Positions 5,292 through 56,884 of a stretch of 64,000 nucleotides of DNA are shown here, in pieces. The position numbers were made by a program, and so were the translations under genes. Location: positions 1 to 64,000 of the forward strand of contig DF237470.1 in the NCBI GenBank assembly GCA_000708835.1, in the 5' to 3' direction. Origin of the DNA: Klebsormidium nitens. Taxonomy: Eukaryota; Plantae; Klebsormidiophyceae. Position 1 is the stretch's first letter; each line of letters begins with the position of its first letter. The notes below the pieces were generated by a model. It did not search any database. It had not been told where the DNA came from and was given only the letters and a program-made list of their open reading frames with translations.

Positions 5292-5865
5292 NNNNNNNNN
5301 NNNNNNNNNNNNNNNNNNNNNNNNNNNNNNNNNNNNNNNNNNNNNNNNNNNNNNNNNNNNNNNNNNNNNNNNNNNNNNNNNNNNNNNNNNNNNNNNNNNN
5401 NNNNNNNNNNNNNNNNNNNNNNNNNNNNNNNNNNNNNNNNNNNNNNNNNNNNNNNNNNNNNNNNNNNNNNNNNNNNNNNNNNNNNNNNNNNNNNNNNNNN
5501 NNNNNNNNNNNNNNNNNNNNNNNNNNNNNNNNNNNNNNNNNNNNNNNNNNNNNNNNNNNNNNNNNNNNNNNNNNNNNNNNNNNNNNNNNNNNNNNNNNNN
5601 NNNNNNNNNNNNNNNNNNNNNNNNNNNNNNNNNNNNNNNNNNNNNNNNNNNNNNNNNNNNNNNNNNNNNNNNNNNNNNNNNNNNNNNNNNNNNNNNNNNN
5701 NNNNNNNNNNNNNNNNNNNNNNNNNNNNNNNNNNNNNNNNNNNNNNNNNNNNNNNNNNNNNNNNNNNNNNNNNNNNNNNNNNNNNNNNNNNNNNNNNNNN
5801 NNNNNNNNNNNNNNNNNNNNNNNNNNNNNNNNNNNNNNNNNNNNNNNNNNNNNNNNNNNNNNNNN
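5292..5865. other. Assembly gap (N run)
   Basis: 574 consecutive N. Confidence 1.
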
Positions 5866-51191: not shown

Positions 51192-51695
51192 TCATGGGAG
51201 GACATTGCGGGCGCGGGGCGGCCGCCTCGTACTGGTCGTAAGTATACGGTACGTACGGTATACGTACCGGTACCCTAGCGACTAGCTGGTCAGGTTTATC
51301 AGTGGACCATGATTGTGAGCAAAGTTGGCACCGTAGGCAGTACAGCAGTACTACCTACGGGTGGAAGTTACTAGTACTGCAATACTACAGTACCGTAGTT
51401 GTACAGCACTACACAAAAACCATGGCGTCACCCTGAGTGCTATTACCGGTAGTACCGTACACGTTGTGTGGTGAATACCGTATCTTTGGATGCATGCTGA
51501 ATCCTGATCATGTCGATTGAAAGACAGACTGTCACAGGGATATTCTTGGTCACAGTCAACGACGTCGGCGCAGCACTTTCCTCCCCCAGCATGGCGTCTA
51601 CTTTGGGTTGAGAGCTCATTCAGCTGGACTATCAAACCTGTGGGACGTTTATGGGCAAGATCATATCTTACTATATGTATATTGCACATTGAGGT

Positions 51696-52210
51696 GAGAG
51701 CTCAGGCGTTCCCCTTCAGGATGTCCCGCGTTTCGCATTCCTTCGCTGGTTGCATTCTGATTCCCTCGCGATTGCATCAAAACCCTTGCCTGGTTTCTGA
51801 ATCCTCTTTAGCTGTTGAACATTGCAACTAGTCTTTTGGGTCTTGATGATTTGTCAGCAAGAGAGCTCAGGCGTTCCCCTTCAGGATGTCCCGCGGTGCA
51901 TAATGCTGCCAGGCTGCTCGTTTCCTTGCTGGTTGCCTTTTGATTTCCTTGTAATTGCATCAAAACGCTTGCCGGCTACTTGAATCCTCTTCAGCTGCAA
52001 CTATCAATTAGTCTTTCGGGCTTTGAAAATTTGTCAGAGAGCTCAAGCGGTCCCCTTCAGGATCTCCTATGGTGCATTATGTGCGGCTGCCAGGTTGTCG
52101 CTGGTTGCATTTTGATTTCTTCGTGATTGCATCAAAACCCTTGCCTATCTTCTGAATCCGCTTCAGCTGCAATAATGCAATTAGTTTTTGGGCTTTGTTG
52201 ATCTGTCAGC
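51696..52210. repeat. Three diverged tandem copies of a ~170-bp unit, probably inside a 5' UTR intron
   Basis: Units start gagagctca(g/a)gcg(t/g)tccccttcaggat at 51696, 51861, 52037 and share gattgcatcaaaac and tgaatcc..ttcagctg. Candidate intron: GT 51694 to AG 52631. Confidence 0.88.
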
Positions 52211-52651
52211 GAGTATGTGGCATCATATCACTGTTTGAACATCTGCTTTGGATTTGGAGTGGGCCCCCATTCGCGTAACCCGATCCGTGCTGATTAGGCC
52301 GGCCAGGGATACATAAGCTGATCACATGAAGTAACTCCTGTCTTCCTTACATTCATGTTCACATGTACAGGATTTTACTCAATGTGTCTACATTGCGCAT
52401 TTTATGGAGTGTCCAGACTGGAAGAGCAGGCAGGGGAAGGGTGACTGAGTAAGTTGATGACTTAGCTTGCTTCCACCTGTTTGAGTCCTTGCCGCAAGTG
52501 AAATGAAGGAGATCGATACGGATTCTTCAAAAATGCATCGAATGCAACACGATCATAGCATGCTGGATGCAAGTCGAGTTGACTGTGTTGTGTGTCCTTT
52601 CACAAGATGTTGACATGCATTTCGGTTGCAGGTCTTATCCTTCTTGGCACC

Positions 52652-53200
52652 ATGGCTGGCAATGACCAGGCCGGCGTTGACATACAACCTCTATTGCTGA
52701 AGATAGCAGACGGAGAGCTGCTGAGCCCCGAGAAGCAGGCGGAGTTAGATGGCCTCATTCCAAGGGTCTCGGAGTTGCGCCTGGGAAGACTTTACGAGCT
52801 CGAGCTGGATGTGAGGCCTCTGGCAGGGGTTCTAGGCCGAATGGAGGGGCTGACCTTGCTGCAACTAGTTGGAAACAACACTGACTCCGGGGCTCTGACC
52901 GAGGCGGTGGGCAGGTTGTCGAAACTCAGCTCCCTGAGCCTGGTGAAGATTGGGGCCTTAGGCGCAAGGGAGCTGGCGGGTGCGCTGAGCAAGATCACAG
53001 GGCTAGCTTTGCTGGACCTAGCACACAACCACATTGGGGCCGAGGCCGCGAGGGCCCTAGCGGGACCGCTGAGCAAGATTACAGGTCTGACCTCGCTGAA
53101 CCTGAATTGCAACTTTATGGGGGTCGACGGCGCGAGGGCCCTAGGGGGAAGGCTGGGCCAGATGACGGGGCTGACCTCGCTGAGCCTCTCCTATAATGAC
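52652..53200 (+). CDS. Ribonuclease-inhibitor-type leucine-rich repeat region (~5 repeats), N-terminal part of an LRR-patatin locus
   Basis: ATG at 52652 after an acceptor at 52631. 28-residue repeats LSKITGLALLDLAHNHIGAEAARALAGP / LSKITGLTSLNLNCNFMGVDGARALGGR / LGQMTGLTSLSLSYN. The repeat stops abruptly at ~53197. Confidence 0.85.
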
Positions 53201-55163
53201 AAGCGCGCGAAGCGGTGGAGAGGGTCAAGGCACTTCTGTTCTGGGTGTGAGCTGGGTTCAGCGCGAGGGCGAACCGATCGGCGACGAAGTCGATATGCCC
53301 ACTTTCAAGGAGCACAGAAACGTGGAGTGGGAGCGGAAAGGGGTCATCCGCATCCTGAGCATCGACGGAGGCGGGGTGAGGGGTGTTATTCCCGCGGTCA
53401 TACTCGGCAAGCTGAAGGAGCATCTGGGAGGGAAGGAGATCTGGGAGTGCTTCGACGCCGTAACTGGTGAGCGGTTCAAAGTTTCTTGACATTGTCTGTC
53501 AGACGTAACCATTCGAGACGCATACGAAACGGACGGTCTCAGTGAAAAGTTTTGGCGATGGGCTCAGTGCGGACAGCCTGGGGACTCTCGTCTTTCTTTG
53601 GAAGCTTTCGTCCGAGTTGCTGTGCTGCAATGATTCTTCATTGGTTCTTGTTTCTGCGGGCAGGCTGTGGGCTGCCTTTAGAAACATTTATCCAGCCTGT
53701 TCGGCTGGCTTCCTTGTTTCTCTGACTAAGATGCGTAATGTAGTTGCACCTCGAAAGAGCGGCACTTAATGGAAGAACTGGTACTTCCGTCGTCAAGCCA
53801 AGAGTTTTGAGTACCTGTGTCGACGACTTTGAAGACGCCCTGTTCCTTGTGCGGCTTTACAAGTACACCGCTTTTCCTGTCGAATCTGAGCCCATGCGCA
53901 CATGCAGCTATCCAACCTCCTTTCCCTTGAGATTGACCTCCTTTCTCTTGATTATGCCCTGCGGTCGGAATCGCGTTCTCACGAATTGTGTCCGTAAATC
54001 TGGTGAAGCGGTCATACGCTGATTGGCTTGCCTAACACTGAGAAGAGTCATAACGTAGATGGGCCTGCTGGTCCGTTTCCCGATGCTCCACTTTTCCAAG
54101 GAAGGAGAAGCTGAAGCATCGGCCCCACTTCGTCGCTCCAGGCCTGATGACCTTCCCAGCAAAACGTAGCTAGAGCTGGGAGCAACGGATGGATGTTGAC
54201 AAGGAAGTGCTTCGGGGGGCACGGACTGTATCTTACTCACTGATTGTATCTCATTGTCCTTTGTGCGATGCAGGCACCAGCACCGGGGCGATCCTAGCCA
54301 GCATGCTGTTTGCACGGAAGGAGGTGGAGGGCGCCCTGCAGAAGGCTGCCCTCTATAGCCCCGAAGAGGCGAGCGAGGAGTACCTAAAACTGGCCAACCA
54401 GATATTCCCGTCTTCCACCTCCGTCCGTGGATGGAGAAAAGCACTGTGTGGAATTGTTCCTTTGTACTCGGCAGCTCCATTGGAGTCCAAGCTAGTCACC
54501 GCGCTCGGTGAGCAGACGCTTTCGGACACCCTCAAGCCCCTGCTCGTCCCCGCCTACGACCTGCGATCCTCTTCTCTGGTCTTCTTCAGCAGCATGGACA
54601 AGGTCAGGGGTAACCTCCCGCTCAGAGATGTGTGCCGAGCCACGTCTGCGGCCCCGACGTACTTCCCTGCAAAATCTTTGGAGGGCCCAAACCTCAACAT
54701 CCTGGCTATCGACGGCGGTATGGCTGCCAATAACCCCGTGCTACATGGCATGGCACATGTTTTCAAATCGCCCAAGAACTTTCCCGGCCCGGTTGAGAAG
54801 ATGTTAGTGCTCTCGCTGGGGACTGGAGAAGGCGGGCGCGAGAGCAAGGATCGGTCCAAGTTGGCGAGTCGAGGGCGGTTCGGATGGGTGATGCATCTGG
54901 TCGACGTGATGATGGGCGGGACCTCCCACGCGCAGCACCTCTCGGCGAATAAAACGCTCACGGGGGCAAATTACCTGCGGCTACAGGCGGTTGGGCTGTC
55001 CAGGGAAGACATGCGGATGGACCATGGGGACCCGAAGCATCTAGAGAGTCTCAGGAAGAAGGTCGAGCAGCACGTTTGTGTCCAGGAGCACGGGAAGAAC
55101 GTGTACGAGACATGGGAGGATCGGCTGAAGGACTTTGCGGAGAAGCTCCTTGAGGTTCAATAG
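53196..55163 (+). CDS. Patatin-like phospholipase (plant pPLA-II-like), 2 exons, catalytic motifs intact
   Basis: Exons 53196-53466 and 54274-55163 (phase 1). Oxyanion motif ILSIDGGGVRG; nucleophile FDAVTG|TSTG (GxSxG); SAAPTYFP; catalytic Asp IDGGMAANNP; LVLSLGTG; NYLRLQ. The frame is +1 relative to the upstream LRR ORF. Confidence 0.92.
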
Positions 55164-56884
55164 AGAGGCATAGTAGGTCGTTAACTAGAAGGACGTCATG
55201 ATTGTTTGGTAGGCGGCAGCTCTGGTAGTGGCGCTCATTCAATTGTGTAAATTGTGCATGACACTCGTAGGCAGCATCCTCAGAACAGTGCATCGTTGCT
55301 ATTGTTTGTTGTACAGTCCAGTATGCACGGTGTGCATGGTCTTGACTAGCCTGGCTCGCATTGAAGTTGCATCACCTTGTTTGTCAGCCGCCGACAACTT
55401 GAACAACTTGTCATGAGATTTGTCAGATGTTGTGATCTAGAAATTGACCTATTTGAATCCGTCAACCTATATACATGTAGTGCAGAACATCGCACTTTCT
55501 TGAGGGACATGAATGACTGCCCCTCTGCCCCCGGGCCGGCTTATACAATTTACTTTGCCATTTTAAAGTAGATTCAAAGTTGCGTTTTGAGCATGAACTT
55601 TTGAAAACCGTGAACTCCGCCGGAGGCTCGAGCTAGGCAAGCTAATTCAAGTTGTCACTGTCACTGTCCAGCGCCGCCGCGCAGTTGCTTATATATGTTA
55701 TCGTAGCAACATGCAGTGGATCGACCAGAACTTACATGGGACCGGATCAGCTGAGCTGGCGCGCCAATTGAACCTTTATTGTTATGATAATGCTCGGGCT
55801 TGGATATGCATCGGGTATTCATCGGTGTATACGGTATCCGATCTGATGCATGGCCTCAGTCGCTCCAACCGGCCCGCGCGCGCACTGCATATGACTGAAA
55901 GCACTTGCCAGTTGGATCGGATCAAACATTTCATTAAAAATCTCGCTCAATTAAAGTAATGATGCCAGGAGTAATGATATACCACTAGCTGCTTAAAACT
56001 TAATTAGGTACACAGTGACGCTTTACATATTTGAATTTCGACGCCACATTGACAAGTTGCATGGCGCCGGCCAGCGCGCCTGGCTGGCGTCGCGGCCGCA
56101 GTCAAGTGACTGCCTGCCATGCCAGCGGAACACACAATATAACTTCACGAGTCAATCAAACAAGTTTAAGTATTGATTGATCCTCGCAGGCTAGGATGTG
56201 CGACGCACCCCGGGTCAGGGCCCGGTCGACTAGGCTAGCTTTTTGTATGCAGGCCGGCGCGATCATATATTTGCGTTCAATAAGCTAGATGATCGGAAAG
56301 CATGTTTGTATATAGGCGGCGCGTATATGCATCATGCCTGGCCAAGTGCGTTGCTGCGGAAGGCTTGTGTCTCATGAGTTGAACTTGTTACATAAGGCTT
56401 GCGGTCACCGTGTGCCATGGCACACTGATGGAAGGCTTGTGATAGTACAGCCAGGCTGATCATCTGCCTCCACAGATCCGCCCAGCCAGTCGACCACCTG
56501 GCCGAATGATTTCATTGCAGGCTGCCAGACAACGTACTTCTGGTGGCGAGAGGCCTGAAGTAGCTGTTTTAACAATCGTAAGAGAGATTCTCATGGTGGC
56601 GACTTGAACGATGACAGACTAAAGTTTCCTCTGGTTTTATAAGACGCTTCTTGCTGTTACCCAACTACTTTGCGCTTGTACACATTATTGCAGAACGCAC
56701 ATACGAATTGACCAATGAACATCTTTAGACAAACTGTCGTAGCAGTGCACTTGACCTCAACGCTGACCAACCCCCGAAACACTTGACCGTCAACCCTACC
56801 CTACTCTCTCGGACGACTCTTTGACTGTAACCAACATGCGGTCCCCCAGTTCAAGAAACGCCATGTGCTGATGACCGCCTGATG

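Follow-up and report, generated by a model that had tools for sequence, protein, structure and literature searches.

An expressed locus joining leucine-rich repeats to a patatin-type lipase in the alga Klebsormidium nitens, with a frame change at the domain junction

Patatin-type lipases occur on their own and in the company of repeat modules. Plant pPLA-I combines ARM repeats, leucine-rich repeats (LRRs) and a patatin domain in about 1,300 amino acids (aa), and it resembles the kind of animal enzyme represented by iPLA2-beta, in which ankyrin repeats are combined with patatin. The plant pPLA-II enzymes have no N-terminal repeat module, and potato patatin (Pat17) and its pPLA-II relatives are recognized by the motifs GGGxRG, GTSTG and DG[GA]; in bacteria, CapV is the patatin of the cyclic oligonucleotide-based antiphage signalling system (CBASS). 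In iPLA2-beta, CapV and PLP-1 the lipase is under the control of a ligand or of a repeat or sensor module attached to it. Repeat modules on these lipases are a recurring means of controlling a dangerous, membrane-cutting enzyme, with ankyrin repeats in iPLA2-beta, ARM repeats and LRRs in pPLA-I and a NOD-TPR arrangement in PLP-1, a fungal patatin-carrying cell-death NOD-like receptor (NLR), as cited in PMC10952240. Here we analyse a stretch of 64,000 nucleotides (nt) from the streptophyte alga Klebsormidium nitens (contig DF237470.1, positions 1 to 64,000; hereafter the window), on the plus strand of which an LRR module lies directly 5' of a patatin-type lipase in one expressed gene. The original prediction, made from the letters alone, regarded this gene as a candidate minimal sensor-effector immune protein. 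Both modules proved to be intact and to share one mRNA, but they are encoded in different frames. We favour, at about an even chance, an expressed, lineage-specific LRR-patatin fusion that was recently broken by a frame change at the junction, rather than a working one-piece sensor-lipase.

RNA evidence was taken from four runs, each belonging to a different study, whose Logan contigs were aligned to positions 52200-56000; all of them contain GT..AG joints and thus derive from RNA. They probably represent one strain, and transcript starts, rare isoforms and expression levels are not visible from contigs of this kind. In all four runs the LRR and patatin parts are carried on one spliced mRNA. 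The transcript is present in 20 runs from 7 studies. Ahead of the AUG at 52652, its two leader exons hold only short upstream open reading frames (uORFs), of which those with ATGs at 51592, 52382 and 52404 are examples. The first exon is covered by the longest contig for ~147 nt on the 5' side of its splice junction. In exon 2 the LRR frame is closed upstream by a TGA (52445-52447), so that the LRR open reading frame (ORF) begins at AUG 52652. An NB-ARC or other coding exon further upstream was considered and ruled out on the strength of this stop and of the uORF-only leader exons. Intron 3 splits the codon for the first Gly of GTSTG, and splicing brings ...DAVTG and TSTG... together with the patatin frame preserved; the nucleophile motif of the lipase is thus created by splicing. 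The region of this intron (53438-54302) is partly or wholly retained in low-depth contigs of three of the four runs, at depths of 2.6-4.3 against 30-138 for the spliced form, and these contigs are probably unspliced precursor.

Codon starts fall on positions 2 mod 3 in the LRR part and on positions 0 mod 3 in the patatin part, an offset of +1 that is found in the DNA and in the mRNA, and no single frame runs through both domains in either of them. The proposal that the LRRs are joined directly to the patatin therefore holds for their order on one transcript and not for a single polypeptide, which is readable neither from the genome nor from the dominant mRNA. Both parts are free of stops, over 182 codons for the LRRs and 386 codons for the patatin. 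The patatin frame opens at 53184, and the LRR frame stays open to the end of exon 3 and meets its stop, a TAG, only after the splice. The ORF from AUG 52652 hence comprises 299 codons, namely 182 of LRR and a 117-residue out-of-frame tail. In terms of nucleotides, the net +1 shift corresponds to the loss of two or the gain of one. Codon statistics locate the switch: a change-point analysis of codon log-odds puts the passage from the LRR to the patatin frame at 53189-53220, the pattern of GC by codon position swaps frame between 53200 and 53240, and the tail of the LRR frame scores as non-coding (log-odds of -2 to -6 per 10 codons). It is the sixth LRR unit in which the switch occurs, immediately behind the beta-strand, a strand that begins in the LRR frame at the very place where the patatin frame opens, and a short run of CG dinucleotides (53204-53209) lies within the zone.

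Around position 53200 the RNA contigs of all four runs reproduce the genomic letters exactly, with no indel and no joint. An assembly error was ruled out as the cause of the mismatch, as four independently assembled RNA data sets carry identical letters; since the RNA data are probably all from the same strain, a strain-specific mutation may lie behind it. A short intron that would restore the frame was rejected as well, because GT..AG pairs with a suitable phase span no more than 28 and 37 nt and no such joint occurs in the RNA contigs.

The two modules on either side of the switch are well preserved. Pfam LRR_6 matches the first with 26.7 bits against a cut-off of 23.4, and besides two clean units of 28 residues the translation of 52652-53197 includes the beta-strand (LTSLSLSYN) of a sixth unit. 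RI-type LRRs are characterized by an LRR_6 match and by a unit length of 28-29 residues, the second half of each unit being helical; the module is of this type, and the Atlas neighbours of the module all belong to LRR_6/RNI clusters, in agreement with what had been predicted. The start codon stands in a strong context (ACCATGG), and GC at the three codon positions amounts to 0.64/0.45/0.72 over the LRRs, compared with 0.61-0.65/0.43-0.44/0.71-0.73 in the patatin part. The Pfam scan of the locus returned LRR and patatin and no further domain; NB-ARC, NACHT, ARM and ankyrin were all absent from it, as had been foreseen. Because the LRR ORF starts at 52652 behind a stop and the 5' part of the mRNA is an untranslated leader, none of these four domains can belong to the protein, which consequently lacks the central NB-ARC or NACHT NTPase of an NLR or of a signal transduction ATPase with numerous domains (STAND) receptor.

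The patatin domain is recognized by PF01734 in the last exon alone (8.8e-15; 55.8 bits against a gathering cut-off of 27.7). Translated in the patatin frame, the spliced product is 100% identical to the public model GAQ89431.1 (KFL_005210040; P0001 in our searches), which also carries PF01734; it is 386 aa long and labelled 'hypothetical protein / Patatin'. This model consists of the patatin part alone and omits the LRR half, thereby hiding the frame problem at the junction. The oxyanion motif DGGGVRG lies at 53364-53384, the codon of the nucleophile Ser at 54279-54281 and the Asp of DGG at 54711-54713. In the alignment with Pat17, DGGGVRG, IDGG and the splice-formed GTSTG all coincide with the equivalent motifs, so that all catalytic motifs are kept and the predicted intactness of the domain is borne out. 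The spacing had been put at about 45 codons after the LRRs; measured from the last LRR strand, the patatin core (RILSIDGGG) begins after ~50 codons and GGGxRG after ~55. Likewise, the placement of both domains in the same exon applies to GGGxRG, which shares exon 3 with the LRRs, but not to GTSTG and DGG, which lie in the next exon beyond an 807-nt intron.

Among solved structures, Pat17 (PDB 1OXW) is the best relative of the K. nitens patatin (3.9e-20), the match running from model residues 48-382 to Pat17 residues 13-360 and including the C-terminal helices. The motifs of the pPLA-II enzymes are likewise shared, although those enzymes are without the repeat module found here. CapV is the second-best solved relative. 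The NCBIfam CBASS_lipase model scores 162.7, under its cut-off of 200, and in contrast to CapV the K. nitens gene is spliced and eukaryotic, has no operon or cyclase context and has no NB-ARC or NACHT. The gene resembles pPLA-I in placing LRRs N-terminal to patatin in a streptophyte; it differs in having no ARM match and in its length, which would be ~570 residues for the joined frames. None of the best 150 representatives in the patatin search exceeds 942 aa, and one of the matches is an ankyrin-patatin protein (P0078). Whereas the match to Pat17 is full-length, iPLA2-beta (PDB 6AUN) matches over only 55 residues (1.8e-7). Judged by these comparisons the domain is a patatin of the Pat17/CapV type, and the gene is neither a pPLA-I nor a CapV equivalog. 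The predicted likeness to pPLA-II rather than pPLA-I is upheld by the alignments, while the trees described below divide over it, FastTree placing the gene inside and IQ-TREE outside the streptophyte clade.

The nearest relative of the KFL_005210040 patatin domain is a second K. nitens gene, KFL_001760050 (GAQ84096.1; P0028), at 36% identity and with Shimodaira-Hasegawa-like (SH-like) support of 91-96. It encodes a protein of 757 aa, in which eight Sel1 repeats are followed by patatin. Residues 1-746 lie in one uninterrupted exon (K. nitens DF237125.1; L085:2501-4738), which identifies it as a true in-frame repeat-patatin fusion. The two genes have in common N-terminal solenoid repeats, a short linker, a patatin with the same catalytic motifs and the lack of a NOD; KFL_001760050 differs in having Sel1 repeats instead of RI-type LRRs, in being in frame and in having no intron at the GTSTG codon. 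A close relative of KFL_001760050 was found on a eukaryote-like, algal-looking metagenome contig (L084:151-1581), with Sel1 coding sequence directly upstream and Ty3/zf-CCHC remnants beside it; this contig probably comes from a Klebsormidium-like alga.

In phylogenies of the patatin domain, KFL_005210040, KFL_001760050 and the relative on L084 group together with SH-like support of 93 (FastTree), 96 (IQ-TREE, mixture model) and 91 (LG+G4). FastTree places this trio inside a streptophyte patatin clade (support 96) that also contains Riccia, Ceratodon, Selaginella, Amborella and Spirogloea, and the IQ-TREE mixture model places it outside that clade, in a polytomy. Approximately unbiased (AU) tests, performed under LG+G4, did not reject a grouping with the land-plant patatin clade (p 0.49) or with a clade of metagenomic LRR-patatin proteins (p 0.49-0.53). 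The independent origin that had been proposed for the fusion is accordingly not established.

The metagenomic proteins come from metagenomes and public-run assemblies and join LRR_6 and patatin in frame, with the LRRs N-terminal in P0054, P0087, P0096 and P0119 and C-terminal in P0015, P0065, P0142 and P0149. They form one clade (IQ-TREE support 98), within which the LRRs may thus stand on either end of the lipase. They have no NOD domain, and their patatin is 33-39% identical to that of K. nitens. Their LRR units, in contrast, have 24 residues as compared with 28 in K. nitens, and the similarity between the LRRs is only generic. The patatin trees are compatible both with kinship between these proteins and the K. 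nitens gene and with its absence. The contigs on which they lie are intron-free and gene-dense, carry an IS630 transposase, an integrase and a group II intron reverse transcriptase, and look bacterial and symbiont-like; a scan of bacterial and archaeal species genomes with this clade returned patatin-domain matches only, at 40% identity or less. On three contigs (L086:10001-20828, L088:125-6521 and L001:4552-6654), patatin/LRR genes stand beside LRR-only genes and giant Sel1 proteins of 1,000-2,400 aa.

Closer relatives were sought by three routes. A HMMER search with the last-exon protein against 1.84 billion representatives gave only the gene itself below 1e-30, and the remaining matches were at most 40% identical, save two short partial ones. 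The public model was used for word searches both whole and cut to its first 150 residues, the shorter query being suited to catching short fragments that span the junction; these searches found nothing above ~45% identity beyond short motifs, and a metagenome scan for a close relative was empty. The search for homologues that had been suggested with the prediction was therefore productive in part, yielding the Sel1-patatin gene in K. nitens and the LRR_6-patatin proteins in metagenomes but no in-frame LRR-patatin orthologue. A 568-aa patatin of Spirogloea muscicola (P0272, SM000171S03259; cluster representative 370 aa) has an N-terminal extension of ~160 residues without a Pfam match.

Our preferred reading of these observations is a fusion gene that has lost its reading continuity. 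The ancestral gene would have encoded one cytosolic protein of ~570 residues, with N-terminal RI-type LRRs, a short linker and a patatin acyl-hydrolase of the Pat17/CapV type, in a design akin to that of KFL_001760050. A net +1 change at 53189-53220 would have uncoupled the LRRs from the patatin in the sequenced strain. The broken gene would still be transcribed and correctly spliced; scanning ribosomes would start at AUG 52652 and produce an LRR protein of 299 residues, the last 117 of them nonsense, and the patatin frame, lying behind six further AUGs, would be translated poorly or not at all. We infer that the frames were once continuous because the hand-over takes place inside an LRR unit, without a stop, spacer or intron, at the point where the codon signal switches, and because both halves are intact and a comparable design is realized in a single frame by the sister paralogue; in our reading, the break would be recent and the LRRs would have regulated or targeted the lipase.

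Several points weigh against this interpretation. No orthologue or paralogue with an intact LRR-patatin junction was found by HMMER, by the word searches or in the metagenome scan, so a continuous ancestral ORF is deduced rather than observed. Codon scores across the patatin-frame linker are no better than neutral, and the linker fits the helical half of an LRR unit weakly. Good representation of the mRNA in every run would be unusual if the gene were dead, and the perfectly intact patatin frame could mean that the lipase continues to be used.

A locus that works as two proteins is an unlikely but serious alternative, in which the same mRNA, or a shorter transcript from an internal start, would yield an LRR protein and a separate patatin of 386 or 353 residues, and the two may act in trans. 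It agrees with a public model that consists of patatin alone, with an intact patatin frame containing ATGs at 53196 and 53295, and with the breadth of runs in which the transcript occurs. Against it, the LRR ORF lacks a stop at the end of its repeats and continues through 117 codons of non-coding-like sequence, and leaky scanning to the annotated patatin start at 53196 is made improbable by the six AUGs that separate it from 52652, of which three belong to the patatin frame and soon run into stops. None of the contigs begins within exon 3, though contigs cannot show transcript starts. A complex prediction for the LRR piece with the public patatin model scored 0.00 and gave no verdict, speaking neither for nor against binding.

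The two parts may also never have been fused, the LRRs being the remnant of an unrelated gene that came to serve a patatin gene as its 5' leader, so that their adjacency would have no functional meaning. We consider this improbable. The missing in-frame orthologue is what it would predict, and a search for a donor LRR gene returned only generic LRR proteins with 24-residue units and 49% identity at best, which is also in its favour. A captured remnant is nevertheless difficult to reconcile with LRRs that keep strong codon periodicity, a 182-codon open frame and a strong start context. Nor does it accord with a frame hand-over that takes place within an LRR unit and is not marked by any stop, spacer, intron or promoter-like gap, or with a sister paralogue that is a true repeat-patatin fusion.

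A more far-reaching idea, to which we attach only a slim probability, is that Klebsormidium possesses a small family of NOD-less proteins combining solenoid repeats (Sel1 or LRR) with patatin, in which the repeats would sense a ligand and release a membrane-attacking lipase. The LRR member would then be made as one chain, by +1 frameshifting or a rare splice, or as a split pair of chains, and this minimal sensor-effector design would possibly be shared or exchanged with intracellular bacteria carrying LRR/Sel1-patatin proteins. That LRRs might gate the lipase as an immune sensor-effector, as originally proposed, is purely an analogy with iPLA2-beta, pPLA-I and the fungal PLP-1 (PMC10952240).

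Least probable of all, and very unlikely in our view, is that a single LRR-patatin chain is still produced by programmed +1 ribosomal frameshifting or by a rare exon-3 splice removing 1 mod 3 bases: the intact frames do overlap by ~280 nt, such that one shift anywhere in 53184-53290 would give a continuous reading, and contigs drop rare isoforms, but the site contains neither a 0-frame stop nor a recognized +1 shift motif, the 120 nt 3' of the switch form a less stable fold than shuffled controls (z = +1.37), the frame-fixing GT..AG pairs are as short as described above, and the homologue searches yielded no relative in which a shift site might be conserved.

If the preferred reading of a recently broken fusion is correct, a streptophyte alga with two repeat-patatin genes would show that NOD-less mixing and matching of repeats and lipase was under trial close to where the land-plant lineage begins, with the Sel1 version intact and the LRR version apparently caught just after breaking. 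The locus would then be a clean natural test case for the fate of an expressed fusion gene after a frameshift at its junction. As it stands the finding is modest, and the immune reading is still a hypothesis.

Table 1. Features of the LRR-patatin gene and its leader region in the window
Feature	Position	Strand	Evidence
5' untranslated region (5'UTR), exon 1; 3' end at 51691-51693	51547..51693	+	Four-run loose-end consensus, maps uniquely to 51662-51691
172-nt tandem repeat, 2.6 copies, 78% matches, inside intron 1	51738..52197		Lies between the end of exon 1 and the start of exon 2
5'UTR, exon 2, with short uORFs	52369..52448	+	Contig pieces in four runs and sequence
Intron 2, 183 nt, GT..AG	52449..52631	+	Joint 52448>52632 in 4/4 runs
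Exon 3: start of LRR ORF, frame switch, first 91 patatin-frame codons	52632..53466	+	Contigs of four runs with 0 other letters and 0 gaps
RI-type LRR module, 182 codons	52652..53197	+	Pfam LRR_6 above cut-off, Atlas LRR_6/RNI clusters, GC by codon position
Frame-switch zone, net +1	53184..53220	+	Translation and codon statistics; RNA contigs without indel
First coding part of KFL_005210040, patatin frame	53196..53466	+	100% identity with P0001
Out-of-frame tail of LRR ORF	53198..53466, then 54274-54358 (stop TAG 54356-54358)	+	Translation, codon log-odds
Intron 3, 807 nt, GT..AG	53467..54273	+	Joint in four runs
Last exon	54274 to about 55350	+	RNA contigs
Patatin core and C-terminal helices, stop TAG 55161-55163	54274..55163	+	Pfam Patatin 8.8e-15, Pat17 alignment
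3'UTR, to the reach of the contigs	55164..55351	+	Contigs end at 55306-55351

No second copy of the gene occurs within the 64-kb window, and the neighbouring ORFs of the window have no Pfam matches. We found no paper that names KFL_005210040, and the literature on algal LRR-patatin architectures gave nothing usable. Two assembly gaps appear in the window as runs of N, at 1223-1431 (209 bases) and 5292-5865 (574 bases), both of them far from the LRR-patatin gene.

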